Below are positions 6,956-42,823 of a stretch of DNA of 64,000 nt, piece after piece; the stretch's first letter is position 1; the number at the start of each line of letters is the position of its first letter. The stretch lies in sequence record MG655270.1; one strand, given 5' to 3'. The notes under the pieces were generated by a model. The model saw nothing but the letters and a program-made list of their open reading frames with translations. It was not told the DNA's origin and ran no database searches. The translations under genes and the position numbers were made by a program.

Positions 6956-6988
6956 AGAAAATCTTAGACCTATATAACGGCACTGATA
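6956..6988 (+). promoter_or_regulatory. Phage (probably early, vRNAP) promoter, copy 1
   Basis: AGAAAATCTTAGACCTATATAACGGCACTGATA matches copies 2 and 3. Confidence 0.75.
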
Positions 6989-35510: not shown

Positions 35511-36422
35511 ATGAGTGATTTTACTGACTTAACGAAATTGAAGACCGAATTACCACAAAACATCCAAAAGATTGATGAGCAGGATGATGTGGGTGACTTC
35601 AGCGATCTTAACGACTACCTCATGACCATCATTCCGGATGAACGGCGTGAGCGCTTGATCGCGATCTGTCAAAACTTGAGCACCCTGCAATATCATCAAG
35701 TCCAGCCCGATGTGGATCGGTTACTGATGATGGCCAACGACGGTGAAGCGCCGTCGGTACTCGATGACTTGACCCGGTTGTTATTTGAACACGCTTATGA
35801 CTTAACGAAAAACATGGGCTTTAACTGGGCTGATGAGATTGAGTTTGATCAGCTGTTCCTGCTCGGTGATGTAATCGAAGGTGCCATGTTGATTGATGGC
35901 ATGGAAGACTACGGCGACCTCTCAGCGATCCTGGATGGGGATGACTCAGTTGAAGAGAAGGTGGTGGATATCTGGGGCCTGGTGCTCGACAAAGACATGC
36001 ACCATCTCTTTGAACAGATCCAGTCCATCGAACCGGCGGTGATCAGCGGGATCAAGCAAGTCACGACCCGACCGTATGCCGAAGACGATTATGCAGATGT
36101 GCAGCGCCCACTTGAGTTCGTGGTTGAGCGGTTGGTGAAAGTCCGTGAAATGATGAAGACCGATGGCATTGCTTACCAGCATGTGGCCAAGGGCGGGGCA
36201 TTAGGCGTTGAGCTCGATTCACTGATCACGCTCTACACCCCTGAGTTGAATGCCGTGACCGATCCGATCGAACTGACCGACCTGCTGGTTGCCTTTACCC
36301 TGATCAGCAACACCCCGGATGGGTTGGTGAAATCCACCGCATCCCGGTTGGCAGAAAAATGGATTGATGATATCGAAGTCATCAATGTGGTAGGTAAACA
36401 TATCGACAGGTATCCCGTGTGA
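35511..36422 (+). CDS. Conserved acidic protein (phiKZ gp79-like)
   Basis: 303 aa; overlaps the start of the vRNAP gene; synteny. Confidence 0.7.
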   Translation: MSDFTDLTKLKTELPQNIQKIDEQDDVGDFSDLNDYLMTIIPDERRERLIAICQNLSTLQYHQVQPDVDRLLMMANDGEAPSVLDDLTRLLFEHAYDLTKNMGFNWADEIEFDQLFLLGDVIEGAMLIDGMEDYGDLSAILDGDDSVEEKVVDIWGLVLDKDMHHLFEQIQSIEPAVISGIKQVTTRPYAEDDYADVQRPLEFVVERLVKVREMMKTDGIAYQHVAKGGALGVELDSLITLYTPELNAVTDPIELTDLLVAFTLISNTPDGLVKSTASRLAEKWIDDIEVINVVGKHIDRYPV

Positions 36423-37784: not shown

Positions 37785-38492
37785 ATGTATGGTCTATTGA
37801 TCTTAGCACTACCCCGGTCACCGTACGTCCACATGAGTGCGATGACTGCGGACAGGTTTACTGAACTGCTCCCACAACTCCAGAAAGAGCTCGATGCAGA
37901 TATCTTTCCCAACGTCTGCTTCCAAGGTGCGTTTAACGTCAGCAACACGCGTACTGTAACACCCTTGTTCATTCCGTGTAATGGTTTGGTGTCAGCACGG
38001 GAACTGGGGTATGAGCAGATTCGTAACATTCTCGCTAACCCGGAGAAAGAGATCCAACATCTCACCAACATCGGTGACTGGTTAGGTCGTCCTGGCAGGC
38101 TGATGTTTGGTGATGATGATCAAGGTGTGTTGGTCACTGATATGTATAAGTGGCTACTGCAGGCAGGAAAGGTTCGTCTGTCATTTCGTTTCCAGCCGAT
38201 CTATCTGGCCGACGTAGCAGGCGAAGTAATTCCTACCCACACCTATCCGCGTGATCATTTCTACGACCAGGTCTACCTCGATAAAGACGGTGAGCGTGCT
38301 TTCCTGTCTTACGGCTCGTGTGGTGAAGAAGGCTGTGTCATAGAACCCAGAGAAGAGAAACCCGTGCAAGTGTACGGCGTTACCTACTCGTCACTGGATG
38401 AAGTGGCCCGATGCTATAACCTGCCTGAACAGTACGTGAAAGAACGCGTTGAGTCTGACAGCCTTGAATGGCTGGAGTGGTCATATTTGTAA
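37785..38492 (+). CDS. Hypothetical protein with C-terminal NUMOD1/HTH-like module; paralog of 42041-42823
   Basis: Shares LTNIGDWL and PV...G..YSS..E.A with the 42041 ORF. Confidence 0.7.
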   Translation: MYGLLILALPRSPYVHMSAMTADRFTELLPQLQKELDADIFPNVCFQGAFNVSNTRTVTPLFIPCNGLVSARELGYEQIRNILANPEKEIQHLTNIGDWLGRPGRLMFGDDDQGVLVTDMYKWLLQAGKVRLSFRFQPIYLADVAGEVIPTHTYPRDHFYDQVYLDKDGERAFLSYGSCGEEGCVIEPREEKPVQVYGVTYSSLDEVARCYNLPEQYVKERVESDSLEWLEWSYL

Positions 38493-38620: not shown

Positions 38621-38818
38621 ATGACCACAAACCCGCAGTTTATTTTCGTGGCTCAGAATTCTGATGCTACACACAGCGTAGAGAAACTGGAAGTAGGACG
38701 CGATACCGATACCCAGAAGAACCTCACGGAACTTCGTAAAGGTTTGCCGTTCGACTTCTCGTTTATCATGTCTGAAGAGGCGATCTATCAACTTCGACAG
38801 GCAGGGCACATCAACTAA
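38621..38818 (+). CDS. Small hypothetical protein
   Basis: 65-aa ORF filling the gap before tad2. Confidence 0.55.
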   Translation: MTTNPQFIFVAQNSDATHSVEKLEVGRDTDTQKNLTELRKGLPFDFSFIMSEEAIYQLRQAGHIN

Positions 38819-38833
38819 ACTGCTGAGGTAGTC

Positions 38834-39286
38834 ATGACGAACAAATCGGAGATCTCACACGGTGGTGGTGATCAGCCTATGGAAAAAGAGCAAAGCAACT
38901 TATCCGTATTGGTGAACTACTCCACAGGTGTGATGGAAGGTGACCGTTTTAATTACTCGGTTGCATTGGCGCTGTTGAAAGACGGTATCAAAGTGAAACG
39001 CGAAGACTGGAAGAACGCTTTCCTGGTGTTCGTCCCGGGTAGTCAGAATGTTGAACTGCCAAAAGGGTCGCCGTATGAAGTCGCACTCCACGGTAAGAAG
39101 TCCGTTGCCAATATTCGTCCGCACATCGATCTGTACACGGAGTACGGTGAATTCGAAGTCGGTTGGACCGCCAACCAGGAAGACACCAACGCCGATGACT
39201 GGATGATTGTCTTAGACAAGAACACCAATCAAGACGACAGTGCCGACGAAGAGAAAGAGTCCTCAAACGACGACTCGAAGTCATAA
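38834..39286 (+). CDS. tad2: DUF2829 / Tad2-like anti-defence nucleotide sponge
   Basis: FNYSVALALLKDGIKVKREDWK...FLVFVPG...PHIDLYT...GWTANQEDTNADDWMIV matches the DUF2829 pattern F..AL.ALK.GKKV.R..W...W.ASQ.DML..DW. Confidence 0.8.
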   Translation: MTNKSEISHGGGDQPMEKEQSNLSVLVNYSTGVMEGDRFNYSVALALLKDGIKVKREDWKNAFLVFVPGSQNVELPKGSPYEVALHGKKSVANIRPHIDLYTEYGEFEVGWTANQEDTNADDWMIVLDKNTNQDDSADEEKESSNDDSKS

Positions 39287-39291
39287 ACCCC

Positions 39292-39319
39292 AGGAGAGCT
39301 TCGGCTCTCCTTTTATGCC
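39292..39319 (+). terminator. Hairpin + TTATGCC after tad2
   Basis: AGGAGAGC-TTCG-GCTCTCCT-TTTATGCC. Confidence 0.7.
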
Positions 39320-39335
39320 CATTAAGGAACATGTC

Positions 39336-39695
39336 ATGAGTGAAAAGAAAGCGTTTGAAGTGGTATTGGATAGCCGTCATGAACCGTACGAGGCTTACCA
39401 GTTATTAGTGGCTCGCATCAATACCTTATTGCGCACCGGTCAAGGCTACCATGAAGTGAAACTCACGAAGTGGCAGCTTTACGATAACGGTCTTCTTATC
39501 AAGGGAGATGATGATGTGCATATCTCCTTGTTGCGTCATTTCTATTACGATAAGCAACGCAATACGTTTGGTGGTGGCTTCATGGCCTTTGAGATCCTGG
39601 AAGATTTGGGTCGTTACTACAAGGTGCCCGATATCACAGAAGGGATGAGCGAGAACGTTGGCCTCGTCTTCACGGTCACGGTAACCACACCATAA
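39336..39695 (+). CDS. Hypothetical protein, TAW-family paralog A1
   Basis: Start at ATG 39336; motifs EVKLTKW and GDD..ISLL..F.YD. Confidence 0.7.
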   Translation: MSEKKAFEVVLDSRHEPYEAYQLLVARINTLLRTGQGYHEVKLTKWQLYDNGLLIKGDDDVHISLLRHFYYDKQRNTFGGGFMAFEILEDLGRYYKVPDITEGMSENVGLVFTVTVTTP

Positions 39696-39701
39696 GAGGT
39701 T

Positions 39702-40070
39702 GTGATGAAACCACTCTTCGCCATGAAGTTCGATACCCGGGATGCGGGATTAGGGGATCAGCTCGATCTGCTGCAATCACGGGTGAAGGCTTACTCTAAA
39801 CACGGCACCATGATCAAGGACGTGGCGGTGACGGCCTGGTTGGTCTGTTCGGATAACATGCCAGTTGCCGGTGATGACCCTGCTTATGCCAGCATTATCC
39901 ACCGTTACCGTTACGACATCGAACAGCAGTGTGTGGTCGGTGGGGTCAGTGCCATGGATGCTCTGCGTGAGATCTGGTCGGCGTATGGTCCTGACTCTAC
40001 CCTCCCACCGTTCAGCCGGATACCCGGTGCTGTCGATATGCAATTTACCTTAACTGTGTTCACTATTTAA
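39702..40070 (+). CDS. Hypothetical protein, TAW-family paralog A2
   Basis: Motifs DVAVTAW and GDD...SII..Y.YD. Confidence 0.7.
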   Translation: MMKPLFAMKFDTRDAGLGDQLDLLQSRVKAYSKHGTMIKDVAVTAWLVCSDNMPVAGDDPAYASIIHRYRYDIEQQCVVGGVSAMDALREIWSAYGPDSTLPPFSRIPGAVDMQFTLTVFTI

Positions 40071-40083
40071 AGGAGATGCCCTC

Positions 40084-40476
40084 ATGGGAGTTTCTACTGC
40101 TGCTGCTCGTCGTTCTAAAGAAGGGGTGTTTACCCGGAGTATTGAAGTGCGTCACGATCACTGGAAACGGGATATCACTGATTTAGGACTGGATGTCCAT
40201 AACCTGGTGTTGTGCAAGCAGGAGATCGTGTCCGTTACCCTCACCGCCTGGCGGGCGTATGATGAGTGCGGTGTATTGCGTGGCAGTGCCAAAGAGTTGA
40301 AGTTAGACATTACGGAATGGTTCCTCGGTGACAAAGGCCCGGTCATTAATGATGCGATCAAACCTCTCACGTTTGCCTTCATCATTAATCAACAACGCAG
40401 CCAACGCACGCCCTGGGTAAAAGATGTCCGCTTAGGGCTTAACCTGTCCATTGTCTACAAGAGGATTCAGCAATAA
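40084..40476 (+). CDS. Hypothetical protein, TAW-family paralog B1
   Basis: RBS AAGGAG; motifs SVTLTAW and RGSAKELKLDIT. Confidence 0.7.
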   Translation: MGVSTAAARRSKEGVFTRSIEVRHDHWKRDITDLGLDVHNLVLCKQEIVSVTLTAWRAYDECGVLRGSAKELKLDITEWFLGDKGPVINDAIKPLTFAFIINQQRSQRTPWVKDVRLGLNLSIVYKRIQQ

Positions 40477-40820
40477 TGGAAATTGTCCACCAACTCGATC
40501 TTAGCCACGGCTGGGAACCCTTCAACCGCCTGAAAGCCGCCTTTGCCAAGAAACCCCCGGAGGCGATCTACATCACTGCCTGGGTAGCTCATGGTTATAA
40601 AGGAAACCTCATCGGTGATGAGCAAGTGGTGAAAGGGTCGTGTCAGGAGTGCCGGATTGATGTGACCCACATCTTCTTTCCCAGTCGACCTGAGATCTTG
40701 ATTGGTTTGTCGAGCTTCATTAACACCATTAATCGTGACGGGCCGGTGAAGATCCCGGCCTGGACCGGATCGATTACTCTTTGTCTTGAATTAGCGATAA
40801 GTTATACGGATAGAATTTAA
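40476..40820 (+). CDS. Hypothetical protein, TAW-family paralog B2
   Basis: TAATG overlap; motifs AIYITAW and KGSCQECRIDVT. Confidence 0.7.
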   Translation: MEIVHQLDLSHGWEPFNRLKAAFAKKPPEAIYITAWVAHGYKGNLIGDEQVVKGSCQECRIDVTHIFFPSRPEILIGLSSFINTINRDGPVKIPAWTGSITLCLELAISYTDRI

Positions 40821-40927
40821 TCGGCATATATTCTGTCTCGTTAGCGTAAGCTCGCTAAAAACCCTTTTAAAGTTTTGTATAACAAACTATCAACTTTGTA
40901 GAAAGAAACAAATAGGAAATTAATCTC

Positions 40928-41638
40928 ATGTTGCATGAAAACTTTGAAGCCTTAGTGGCGAACATCGCCAACCAAATCAATCAGCTGGAGCCAGAGGATC
41001 TGTCGTCACTGATCCTGACCAAGAGCGGGGTCTACATCAACGACAAGCGACACGATCGCACGCGTCTGCTGCTGAACCTGTTTACCCCACAACCCGGGCA
41101 CACGCATGACGTGACCTTCGATCAAGAGCTGCAGGATGCTTTCGCTCACAACAACCTAGAGTTTATCAAAGTCGGTGAAGGGATCGCCTACGGACTACTG
41201 CGTACCAGTATCGTTAACAACGAACCCGCGGTGTTCTGGATTCACGCCGATGTCTCCGATGATGCATCATTACTGAAGCAAGCCTGGGATATCATCACCG
41301 ACCTGAAGAAGAATGCGGGTTACCCCCAGGCGTTTAACATTGACGTGCTCGACGTAAGCTGGCATGCGTTAAGCTGGGCACAACTGCTGGGGACTTTGCT
41401 TGACCGCACTGACCCGACCCGCCGGTTCCGCTTGGCAACTAACGCCGACTACGATTTTGTGTTATCCCAGAAAGCCATCACGTACTACCAGGAGACGTTG
41501 AGTAAACGTCCGATGGCACCGGTTGCTTACCTCGATGACACTAACTTGTTTAACGGTGGCGACTTTAACGACAGTGATCGCAACTGGGCAATCGCCCCGA
41601 ACGACAGCACCCGCCCTATCGTGAAGGTGTATGTTTAA
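40928..41638 (+). CDS. Hypothetical protein
   Basis: RBS AGGA; 236 aa. Confidence 0.7.
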   Translation: MLHENFEALVANIANQINQLEPEDLSSLILTKSGVYINDKRHDRTRLLLNLFTPQPGHTHDVTFDQELQDAFAHNNLEFIKVGEGIAYGLLRTSIVNNEPAVFWIHADVSDDASLLKQAWDIITDLKKNAGYPQAFNIDVLDVSWHALSWAQLLGTLLDRTDPTRRFRLATNADYDFVLSQKAITYYQETLSKRPMAPVAYLDDTNLFNGGDFNDSDRNWAIAPNDSTRPIVKVYV

Positions 41639-42040: not shown

Positions 42041-42823
42041 ATGGCTATGACGTTCGAAAAAGAAGGGGACACGTTGCACATTGTGCGACTGAGAACCAAA
42101 GGCTGGTACCACATGACGGTAACCAGCGATCCTGATGCGAGTATGGATATCGTTAACACGAACTTACGTCAGGGCACTTTTACTGATCCACTTTTACAAC
42201 ACCAGTACGACATCTGTAAAAAAGAGATGGGACAAGATCCCAATCCAAATGACATCGTTTTCCACCAGTTCGTGACCACGCCAGACCAGACCGGGTATCA
42301 GTCTGGCCACTGGATGATTCGTGATCACATTCGCCACGGCTATTCACTGAAGTGCCTGACTAACATCGGTGACTGGCTTTCGACCGCAGCCTATCTTTAT
42401 ATCCCAGACCCTGATGATAAAGAGGGCGGTGAGAGAAAATACAAAGTAACTGACTTAGGTAAGTATCTCGACAAGGAAGAGTTATTGGGTCATTCTGACC
42501 ACCTGCCGATGTATTTCTTGCCTGATGAGGAACCGGGTGACAGCTATGATGAGTTGATTGAAACCCATCGTCTCCCGCAACCTGACAAAGGTTACTCTTG
42601 TGTGGCCATCAAGAACGGTATGTCGTTTAGTTTGCTGACGTACAACAACTCCAAGCGGGTGCTTTCAGAAGAGGAAGAACTGCAAACCACAACCGTCCCA
42701 GTCAGGGCAGATGGTTTGCTGTACAGCTCCGTCTTAGAGTTGGCTATGGCTAAGAACGCCCCAGTCTGGTTTGTCTTGGAGATGTTAACCTCCGAAACGG
42801 ACCCGAACTGGCATTTCGTCTAA
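42041..42823 (+). CDS. Hypothetical protein with C-terminal NUMOD1/HTH-like module; paralog of 37785-38492
   Basis: LTNIGDWL and PVRADGLLYSSVLELA motifs. Confidence 0.7.
   Translation: MAMTFEKEGDTLHIVRLRTKGWYHMTVTSDPDASMDIVNTNLRQGTFTDPLLQHQYDICKKEMGQDPNPNDIVFHQFVTTPDQTGYQSGHWMIRDHIRHGYSLKCLTNIGDWLSTAAYLYIPDPDDKEGGERKYKVTDLGKYLDKEELLGHSDHLPMYFLPDEEPGDSYDELIETHRLPQPDKGYSCVAIKNGMSFSLLTYNNSKRVLSEEEELQTTTVPVRADGLLYSSVLELAMAKNAPVWFVLEMLTSETDPNWHFV

Follow-up and report, generated by a model that had tools for sequence, protein, structure and literature searches.

Four small genes behind a Tad2-like gene of Erwinia phage vB_EamM_Mortimer as a diverged paralog array with one predicted fold

The stretch of DNA analyzed here (the window) comprises 64,000 nucleotides of sequence record MG655270.1, read on one strand from 5' to 3'. 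Coordinates are those of the window, and the record coordinate is the window coordinate + 186000. Over positions 38800-41000 the window matches Erwinia phage vB_EamM_Mortimer (MG655270), a member of the species Agricanvirus ray, at 100% identity, and the other Agricanvirus phages of E. amylovora (among them RAY, Ea35-70, Special G, Deimos-Minion, Simmy50 and MadMel) at 94-98%. RAY is a chimallivirus in which the formation of a phage nucleus has been characterized by experiment (PMC10299810). The subject of this work is an array of four adjacent genes at 39336-40820, called g1 to g4 below. A preliminary description made from the letters of the DNA had picked them out as open reading frames (ORFs) of 114-130 amino acids that share a motif, and these ORFs match the GenBank genes gp281-284, all of which are annotated as hypothetical. 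The four genes, with the family letters used here and the expectation value (E) of their match to a PHROG profile, are as follows.

39336-39695, + strand: g1 (Mortimer gp281), 119 amino acids; family A; phrog_6658, E 5.6e-60
39705-40070, + strand: g2 (gp282), 121 amino acids; family A', paralog of g1; phrog_6658, E 8.7e-65
40084-40476, + strand: g3 (gp283), 130 amino acids, isoelectric point (pI) 9.5; family B; phrog_11644, E 4.7e-91
40476-40820, + strand: g4 (gp284), 114 amino acids; family B', paralog of g3; phrog_11536, E 2.6e-80

Little space separates the genes: g1 and g2 are 9 nucleotides apart, g2 and g3 13, and the stop codon of g3 overlaps the start codon of g4 by 1 nucleotide (TAATG). 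A Shine-Dalgarno-like sequence lies before each of them. The start of g2 is the annotated ATG at 39705, which has a GAGG ribosome-binding site; the GTG at 39702 is merely the mechanical start of the ORF. The encoded proteins are small, soluble and mostly acidic, three of the four being acidic or neutral and the product of g3 basic.

When all six frames of the window were searched with the regular expression [VI].[LVI]T[AK]W, exactly four matches were found, one in each gene (VKLTKW, VAVTAW, VTLTAW and IYITAW, in the order g1 to g4). Composition alone predicts about 0.06 matches over all ORFs of at least 100 amino acids, against the four observed; the motif was defined post hoc, and the excess is nevertheless large. 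The other features named in the preliminary description were also recovered from the sequences and models. The motif GDD...S[LI][LI]..[FY].YD is present in both g1 and g2, [RK]GS.[KQ]E.[KR][LI]D[IV]T..F is present in both g3 and g4, and all four proteins close with an alternating hydrophobic stretch, which the models place in the C-terminal strand.

Within each pair the relationship can be detected by simple comparison. BLASTP aligned g1 with g2 at 26% identity (E 4e-12) and g3 with g4 at 26% identity (E 7e-8). The hidden Markov model (HMM) of phrog_6658 is covered over its full length by both g1 and g2 (profile positions 1-121 of 121), and g3 and g4 are likewise full-length matches to their PHROG models, the cross-matches between phrog_11644 and phrog_11536 reaching only E 0.06-0.08. 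Comparison between the pairs required alignments of 10 sequences for family A and seven for family B, taken from the window, RAY, AH06 and metagenomic relatives. The two profiles were aligned by hhalign with a score of 35.7 (E 1.4e-5) over 55 columns, which span β1, α1, β2 with the T-x-W motif and the turn into β3 of the predicted structures. None of 200 column shuffles of family B reached this score (11.6±2.2, maximum 20.4; z about 11), and a reversed profile scored 10.1. Five neighboring gene families, used as natural negative controls, gave scores of 9-13, with one 13-column match at 22.6. The residues common to both pairs are T, W and G only. Judged from these alignments, g1/g2 and g3/g4 are each paralogs, and the two pairs are remotely related to each other.

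The structure of g1 was predicted by AlphaFold2 from the family A alignment with a predicted local distance difference test score (pLDDT) of 89 and a predicted template-modeling score (pTM) of 0.81. Its elements are β4-12, α18-33, β40-50, β53-64, β69-72, β77-80, α84-94 and β108-118. The g3 model (pLDDT 76, pTM 0.67) has the identical order, β-α-β-β-(ββ)-α-β; under the global hhalign alignment, which is collinear, the elements of the two proteins coincide, and T-x-W, which is T44/W46 in g1, lies halfway along β2 in either model. The simplest reading of the motif is that of a structural signature of this strand.

A Foldseek search of the BFVD models with the g1 model returned RAY g2 (template-modeling (TM) score 0.89), g3 (E 3.7e-4, TM 0.69/0.64) and g4 of Simmy50 (TM 0.59/0.62). 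With the g3 model, the same search returned g1 (TM 0.66/0.71), g2 (0.61/0.65) and Simmy50 g4 (0.60/0.67), so that the TM scores between predicted structures of the two pairs lie between 0.59 and 0.71. Four more BFVD entries, of 156, 115, 103 and 108 amino acids, were matched by both models (TM 0.52-0.70, probability 1.00). The UniProt accessions of this set of four are A0A7D3UGG0, A0A7D3UVU1, A0A7D3UHT3 and A0A7D3UG68. These are probably proteins of Salmonella phage SA002, as suggested by synteny and by lengths, three of the four of which fit. The reciprocal set is closed, since the next matches have TM scores of at most 0.36 with either query. The predicted structures thus support the placement of g1 to g4 in one fold family. 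The preliminary description had proposed an ancient array of the form A, A', B, B' built from one small fold, and had named insignificant profile alignments and differing predicted folds as the observations that would speak against it; the profiles proved to be significant and the predicted folds agree, so this proposal is upheld.

In PHROGs, the members of the array are spread over three unrelated families of ‘unknown function’ (phrog_6658, phrog_11644 and phrog_11536), whereas here they form one fold family that is also linked to genes of SA002 and of phage pEa_SNUABM_37. When the complete 294-kb genome of pEa_SNUABM_37 was searched in six frames with the B profile, two matches were found. 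The first was a B-like gene and the second a g1-like gene (E 0.019). The B-like gene, which encodes 115 amino acids in SA002 and 124 in pEa_SNUABM_37, is matched genome-wide at E 0.002-0.007. It belongs to a trio (MGA_286-288 in SA002; 103, 115 and 108 amino acids) with orthologues in pEa_SNUABM_37/48, which is likewise a tandem array and likewise lies behind a virion RNA polymerase β' gene and a phrog_6749-like gene. In the SA002-type genes, similarity to g1 to g4 at the sequence level is close to the detection limit or under it, the motif has lost its T, and the locus has no tad2.

A sceptical reading of these data would be that families A and B are not homologous, and that T-x-W and the topology reflect convergence on a common α+β superfold. 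The profiles resemble each other only over some 55 residues at the N-terminus, and the C-terminal halves score 9.2 against 9.0±1.7 for shuffles, which is background. A HMMER search of the RAY genome with the family A profile did not find g3 or g4 at E ≤ 1, and the ferredoxin-like topology, which the models resemble, is very common. However, the hhalign score stands far above both the shuffles and the natural controls, the global alignment is collinear with coinciding secondary structure, and the BFVD set is closed with a sharp gap behind it. In addition, the two pairs are neighbors in the genome, and a genome-wide search of pEa_SNUABM_37 with the B profile picks up its g1-like gene. Convergence is therefore considered very unlikely.

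Efforts to connect the four proteins to characterized ones gave little. Pfam yielded no match at E ≤ 1 for g1 to g4, NCBIfam and PADLOC yielded no family at the same threshold, a sequence-profile search of the PDB gave nothing below E 0.19, and a search of the ESM Atlas returned nothing. With the models, Foldseek against the whole PDB gave a best E of 0.067 and found no solved sponge of immune signals or other relative of solved fold. A wide PDB scan with VIA-align gave best Z values of 5.2 (g1) and 4.8 (g3), below the noise level of 7-8 stated for the tool. The weak top matches common to both models were a domain of acetone carboxylase β, acetophenone carboxylase and caprolactamase (Z 4.5-5.2, 97-108 residues aligned), followed by ribosomal protein S6, the little finger of Y-family polymerases, ACT and dodecin (Z 3.4-4.4). 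These ferredoxin-like domains have the main element order of the g1 and g3 models. When compared by element order only, the order β1-α1-β2-β3-α2-β4 fits if β4-β5 is taken as an inserted hairpin. The models differ from these domains in this extra β4-β5 hairpin, in the long β2-β3 hairpin and in the lack of common functional residues. No new fold is claimed; what is claimed is a family without a detectable characterized relative. With the databases silent and only T, W and G in common, an enzyme of a known kind does not seem to be indicated. Two points speak against a catalytic or ligand site common to the pairs: they have only T, W and glycine in common, and the SA002-type relatives have lost the T and carry either W or F at the position of the W.

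Only a few related jumbo phages of Erwinia and Salmonella carry the family. A HMMER pass of the family A profile through 1.8 billion representative proteins found three clusters only, word-indexed searches returned only Agricanvirus-like phages, and scans of IMG/VR returned only RAY. Most chimalliviruses in the phage collection lack the family, and Proteus phage 10 carries the flanking phrog_6749-like gene and no family member. No further paralog was found elsewhere in the complete RAY record. Five candidates from the neighborhood (gp279, tad2, gp285, gp286 and gp278/287) were tried as members of the fold family and ruled out by hhalign. In every carrier phage the locus lies just 3' of the virion RNA polymerase β' gene. 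The content of the locus in the window's relatives is as follows.

E. amylovora Agricanvirus phages and AH06: tad2, g1, g2, g3, g4
L020 (an AH06-like contig): tad2, g2, g3, g4; g1 cleanly absent
L002 and L003: tad2, g1, g2, g3; g4 replaced by an unrelated cysteine-rich 143-amino-acid gene and a remnant of a 162-amino-acid gene
L018 and L019: tad2, g1, g2, g3; g4 replaced by an intact 162-amino-acid gene and the cysteine-rich 143-amino-acid gene
pEa_SNUABM_37/48 and contig L010: a single g1-like gene, without tad2
pEa_SNUABM_37 and Salmonella phage SA002: a nearby trio of 103, 115-124 and 108 amino acids

The cassette that replaces g4 (L002, 7319-7750; L018, 5399-6315) encodes the 162-residue protein and a cysteine-rich, zinc-finger-like protein of 143 residues with an acidic tail; in L002, the former gene has been cut down to a C-terminal remnant inside a 170-nucleotide gap. 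The literature on SA002 and pEa_SNUABM_37 makes no mention of the trio or of the g1-like genes.

In the comparison of copy number across related phages that the preliminary description had called for, copies vary independently (L020, L002, L018, L010 and pEa_SNUABM_37), and they are gained, lost and exchanged one by one. The locus is plastic and prone to recombination. This bears on the suggestion, made at the same time, that the proteins may be heteromeric. Obligate hetero-oligomers of A with A' and B with B', or of all four, would suit the tight packing, and the 1-nucleotide overlap of g3 and g4 is found in AH06 too. Paralog pairs frequently heterodimerize, and the strand β2, hydrophobic on both faces, could suggest association through the sheet. 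However, overlapping starts are widespread in phage genomes, and copies that come and go independently argue against obligate heteromers. There is g2 without g1 in L020, a g1-like gene without g2 in L010 and pEa_SNUABM_37, and g3 without g4 in L002, L003, L018 and L019. Moreover, the g2 allele has been swapped (74% identity) while g1 remained 98% identical. Obligate heteromers are accordingly an unlikely state for these proteins, and the suggestion has lost ground.

The swapped allele was revealed by comparison of Mortimer with Ea35-70, in which the g2 proteins are 74% identical and those of the neighbors 98-100%. The Ea35-70 allele is nearer to that of AH06 (88%). The part concerned is the following.

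39746-39876: most diverged segment of g2 (residues ~15-57), allele replaced through recombination

In contigs from four independent plant, phyllosphere and soil metagenomes, this was the sole part of 38800-41000 with less than 80% identity. The synonymous divergence (dS) of g2 is 1.19, against 0.03-0.09 for its neighbors, and its ratio of nonsynonymous to synonymous divergence (dN/dS) is 0.15. Taken together, these two values indicate an old allele introduced by recombination, and they rule out positive selection on g2. Across the array, dN/dS is 0.08-0.28 wherever dS is measurable (0.08-0.26 for g1), and all four genes are kept coding by purifying selection. The duplications themselves are older than the genus, since orthologues cluster by position: g1 of Mortimer and AH06 are 58% identical, g1 and g2 only 26%.

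The surroundings of the array contain the following features.

37785-38492, + strand: gp278, phrog_6749 (E 1.7e-124), left bracket of the variable block
38834-39286, + strand: gp280, Tad2-like (DUF2829) gene, Pfam PF11195; upstream neighbor of g1, context only
39292-39319, + strand: hairpin (8-base-pair stem, UUCG loop) followed by a TTTATGCC box, putative intrinsic terminator in the gap between tad2 and g1
42041-42823, + strand: gp287, phrog_6749 (E 1.9e-121), right bracket of the variable block

The phrog_6749 paralogs gp278 and gp287 bracket a variable block of gp279-gp286, which includes the array. The identification of the upstream gene as tad2, made in the preliminary description, is borne out by Pfam (PF11195, E 4.6e-14, with 53 bits where 25 is the cut-off). 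Between this gene and g1 lies the GC-rich hairpin, with a folding energy of -16.9 kcal/mol (z -3.0), the stem of which is kept through compensatory changes in L002. The TTTATGCC box occurs six times in the window against 1.5 expected. A GC-rich hairpin with the box is also found at other intergenic sites, at 375, 29583 and 44537 on the + strand and at 936 and 53153 on the - strand. By its sequence, the element between tad2 and g1 would belong to the phiKZ-type intrinsic terminator class of this phage. The box ends only ~16 nucleotides before the start codon of g1, and because of this short distance the array probably relies on read-through. No promoter of its own was found for the array.

In a proteomic study of RAY lysates, gp273, the tad2 orthologue, was detected and gp274-277 were not listed (PMC6690015). 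A terminator before g1 agrees weakly with this pattern. Two papers on RAY make no mention of gp274-277. A separate observation concerns the octamer ACCTAYAT, which occurs on the + strand at 6968, 7574, 30084 and 37741; every copy lies between genes and precedes a + strand gene, which is gp278 in one case and g1 in none. Such a count is no more than chance would give (it was reached in 32 of 100 shuffles), and the exclusively intergenic placement is suggestive of a possible phage promoter element.

The neighborhood of tad2 had also been used as an argument for a role of the array in anti-defense. It could even be supposed that the proteins are sponges, homo-oligomers that sequester immune signaling nucleotides and thereby extend the function of the Tad2-like neighbor. 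The known sponges of immune signals, Tad2/DUF2829, Tad1 and Acb2, are likewise small acidic phage accessory proteins, and the array adjoins a Pfam-confirmed Tad2-like gene, encodes small, soluble and mostly acidic proteins and has an invariant aromatic W. Ligand binding at the interface of an oligomer is frequent among small ferredoxin-like domains, ACT and dodecin for example, and both of these are among the weak structural matches. However, no similarity to the sponges in sequence or structure was found. There is no match of g1 to g4 to PF11195 at E ≤ 1, hhalign against the local tad2 alignment scores ~10, which is background, and no solved sponge is matched in the PDB (best E 0.07). The loss of the motif T and the use of W or F in the relatives from SA002 and pEa_SNUABM_37 fit a core residue rather than a ligand contact. 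Adjacency to tad2 is limited to Agricanvirus-like phages, and the predicted terminator stands between tad2 and g1. A sponge function is consequently regarded as quite improbable. The same two facts, a conserved putative terminator before g1 and distant carriers of the fold without tad2 at the locus, weaken the argument from association with tad2 in general.

In carriers, the locus consistently follows the virion RNA polymerase β' gene, and this constant position raises a different possibility, namely that the proteins serve the phage's own program, as accessory factors in transcription, RNA handling, the nucleus or assembly, rather than acting on the host. The basic pI of g3 would be in keeping with this, as would the weak topological likeness to the RNA- and DNA-associated S6 and little-finger domains. 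However, these Z values (3.4-4.4) lie below the noise level of the tool (~7-8), RNP-type motifs (RNP, ribonucleoprotein) are absent, and three of the four proteins are acidic or neutral. Furthermore, copy number varies, and most of the collection's chimalliviruses do without the family; Proteus phage 10, whose flanking genes are the same, is one of them. An internal role is thus improbable.

The reading preferred here is that gp281-284 are four old paralogs of one small domain that act as independent modules binding host or defense components. In this reading, an α+β domain, small and soluble and of the order β-α-β-β-(β-hairpin)-α-β, was duplicated long ago, and its four copies have since diverged strongly; its topology is ferredoxin-like, with T-x-W in mid-β2. 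The genes have their place behind the virion RNA polymerase β' gene, in an accessory block that recombines readily. Transcripts of the array would probably arise by read-through past the tad2 terminator and be less abundant than those of tad2, and each copy alone may be a non-enzymatic binding module against a cytoplasmic target of the host or of its defense. The structural and evolutionary part of this reading is highly probable. The functional part is tentative, and for the reading as a whole the chances appear evenly balanced.

Several observations weigh against it. On the structural side, the model of g3 has only moderate confidence (pLDDT 76), the PDB scans found no structural relative of known function, and the homology between A and B that can be seen at the sequence level is confined to the N-terminal ~55 residues, the C-terminal halves being at background. 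On the functional side, fast turnover is usual in jumbo-phage accessory genes and is not specific for host binding. As for expression, the products are absent from the crude-lysate proteome, which is weak evidence, and the region was present in no run of public RNA sequencing data.

Jumbo phages with a nucleus keep their DNA out of reach of DNA-targeting immunity; cytoplasmic defenses and host takeover remain for them to handle. A more specific form of the functional proposal can be built on this background. The array would be a panel from an unrecognized counter-defense family, in which each paralog is directed against a different cytoplasmic immune component from which the phage nucleus gives no protection, such as abortive-infection sensors, effectors that target translation or RNA, or signaling systems. 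With the Tad2-like gene it would make up an anti-defense island of nucleus-forming phages that can be exchanged, and the old g2 alleles would match different host genotypes. This extended version is doubtful.

A few observations concern the genes that flank the array. gp278 is itself a mosaic, with only 84.5% identity between Mortimer and RAY. Its C-terminus weakly resembles the DNA-binding domain of homing endonucleases (Pfam I-TevI_DNA-bd, E 0.06; PADLOC HEase, E 0.07), and the metagenome contig L010 encodes, at 733-2085, a gp278-like protein with a true GIY-YIG domain (E 2e-6). Relics of homing endonucleases may drive the mosaicism of the locus. In other relatives, a gene for an HD_4 protein (PF13328, of the RelA/SpoT-type HD hydrolase class) replaces gp278 or lies inside the variable block (L018, 2922-3542; L016, 8276-8902). 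By its domain, it would be a candidate accessory gene for the degradation of nucleotide signals at the array locus. Finally, a gene of ~300 amino acids in Proteus phage 10 (L015, 2681-3514), directly upstream of the virion RNA polymerase β' gene, carries the label ‘putative anti-crispr protein’. Its counterpart in the window is at 35511-36422, the position is conserved and core-like, and there is no Pfam support, so the label looks doubtful.

The accessory genes of nucleus-forming jumbo phages are mostly unannotated. Three orphan PHROG families and genes from two other groups of phages can now be brought together in one small predicted fold family, for which the g1 model is a confident one. 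The array locus is a hot spot of gene gain, gene loss and allele exchange, and it provides a defined variable locus for the comparison of fire-blight phages. The family also yields four to eight compact candidates for proteins that may bind components of the host or of its defenses.

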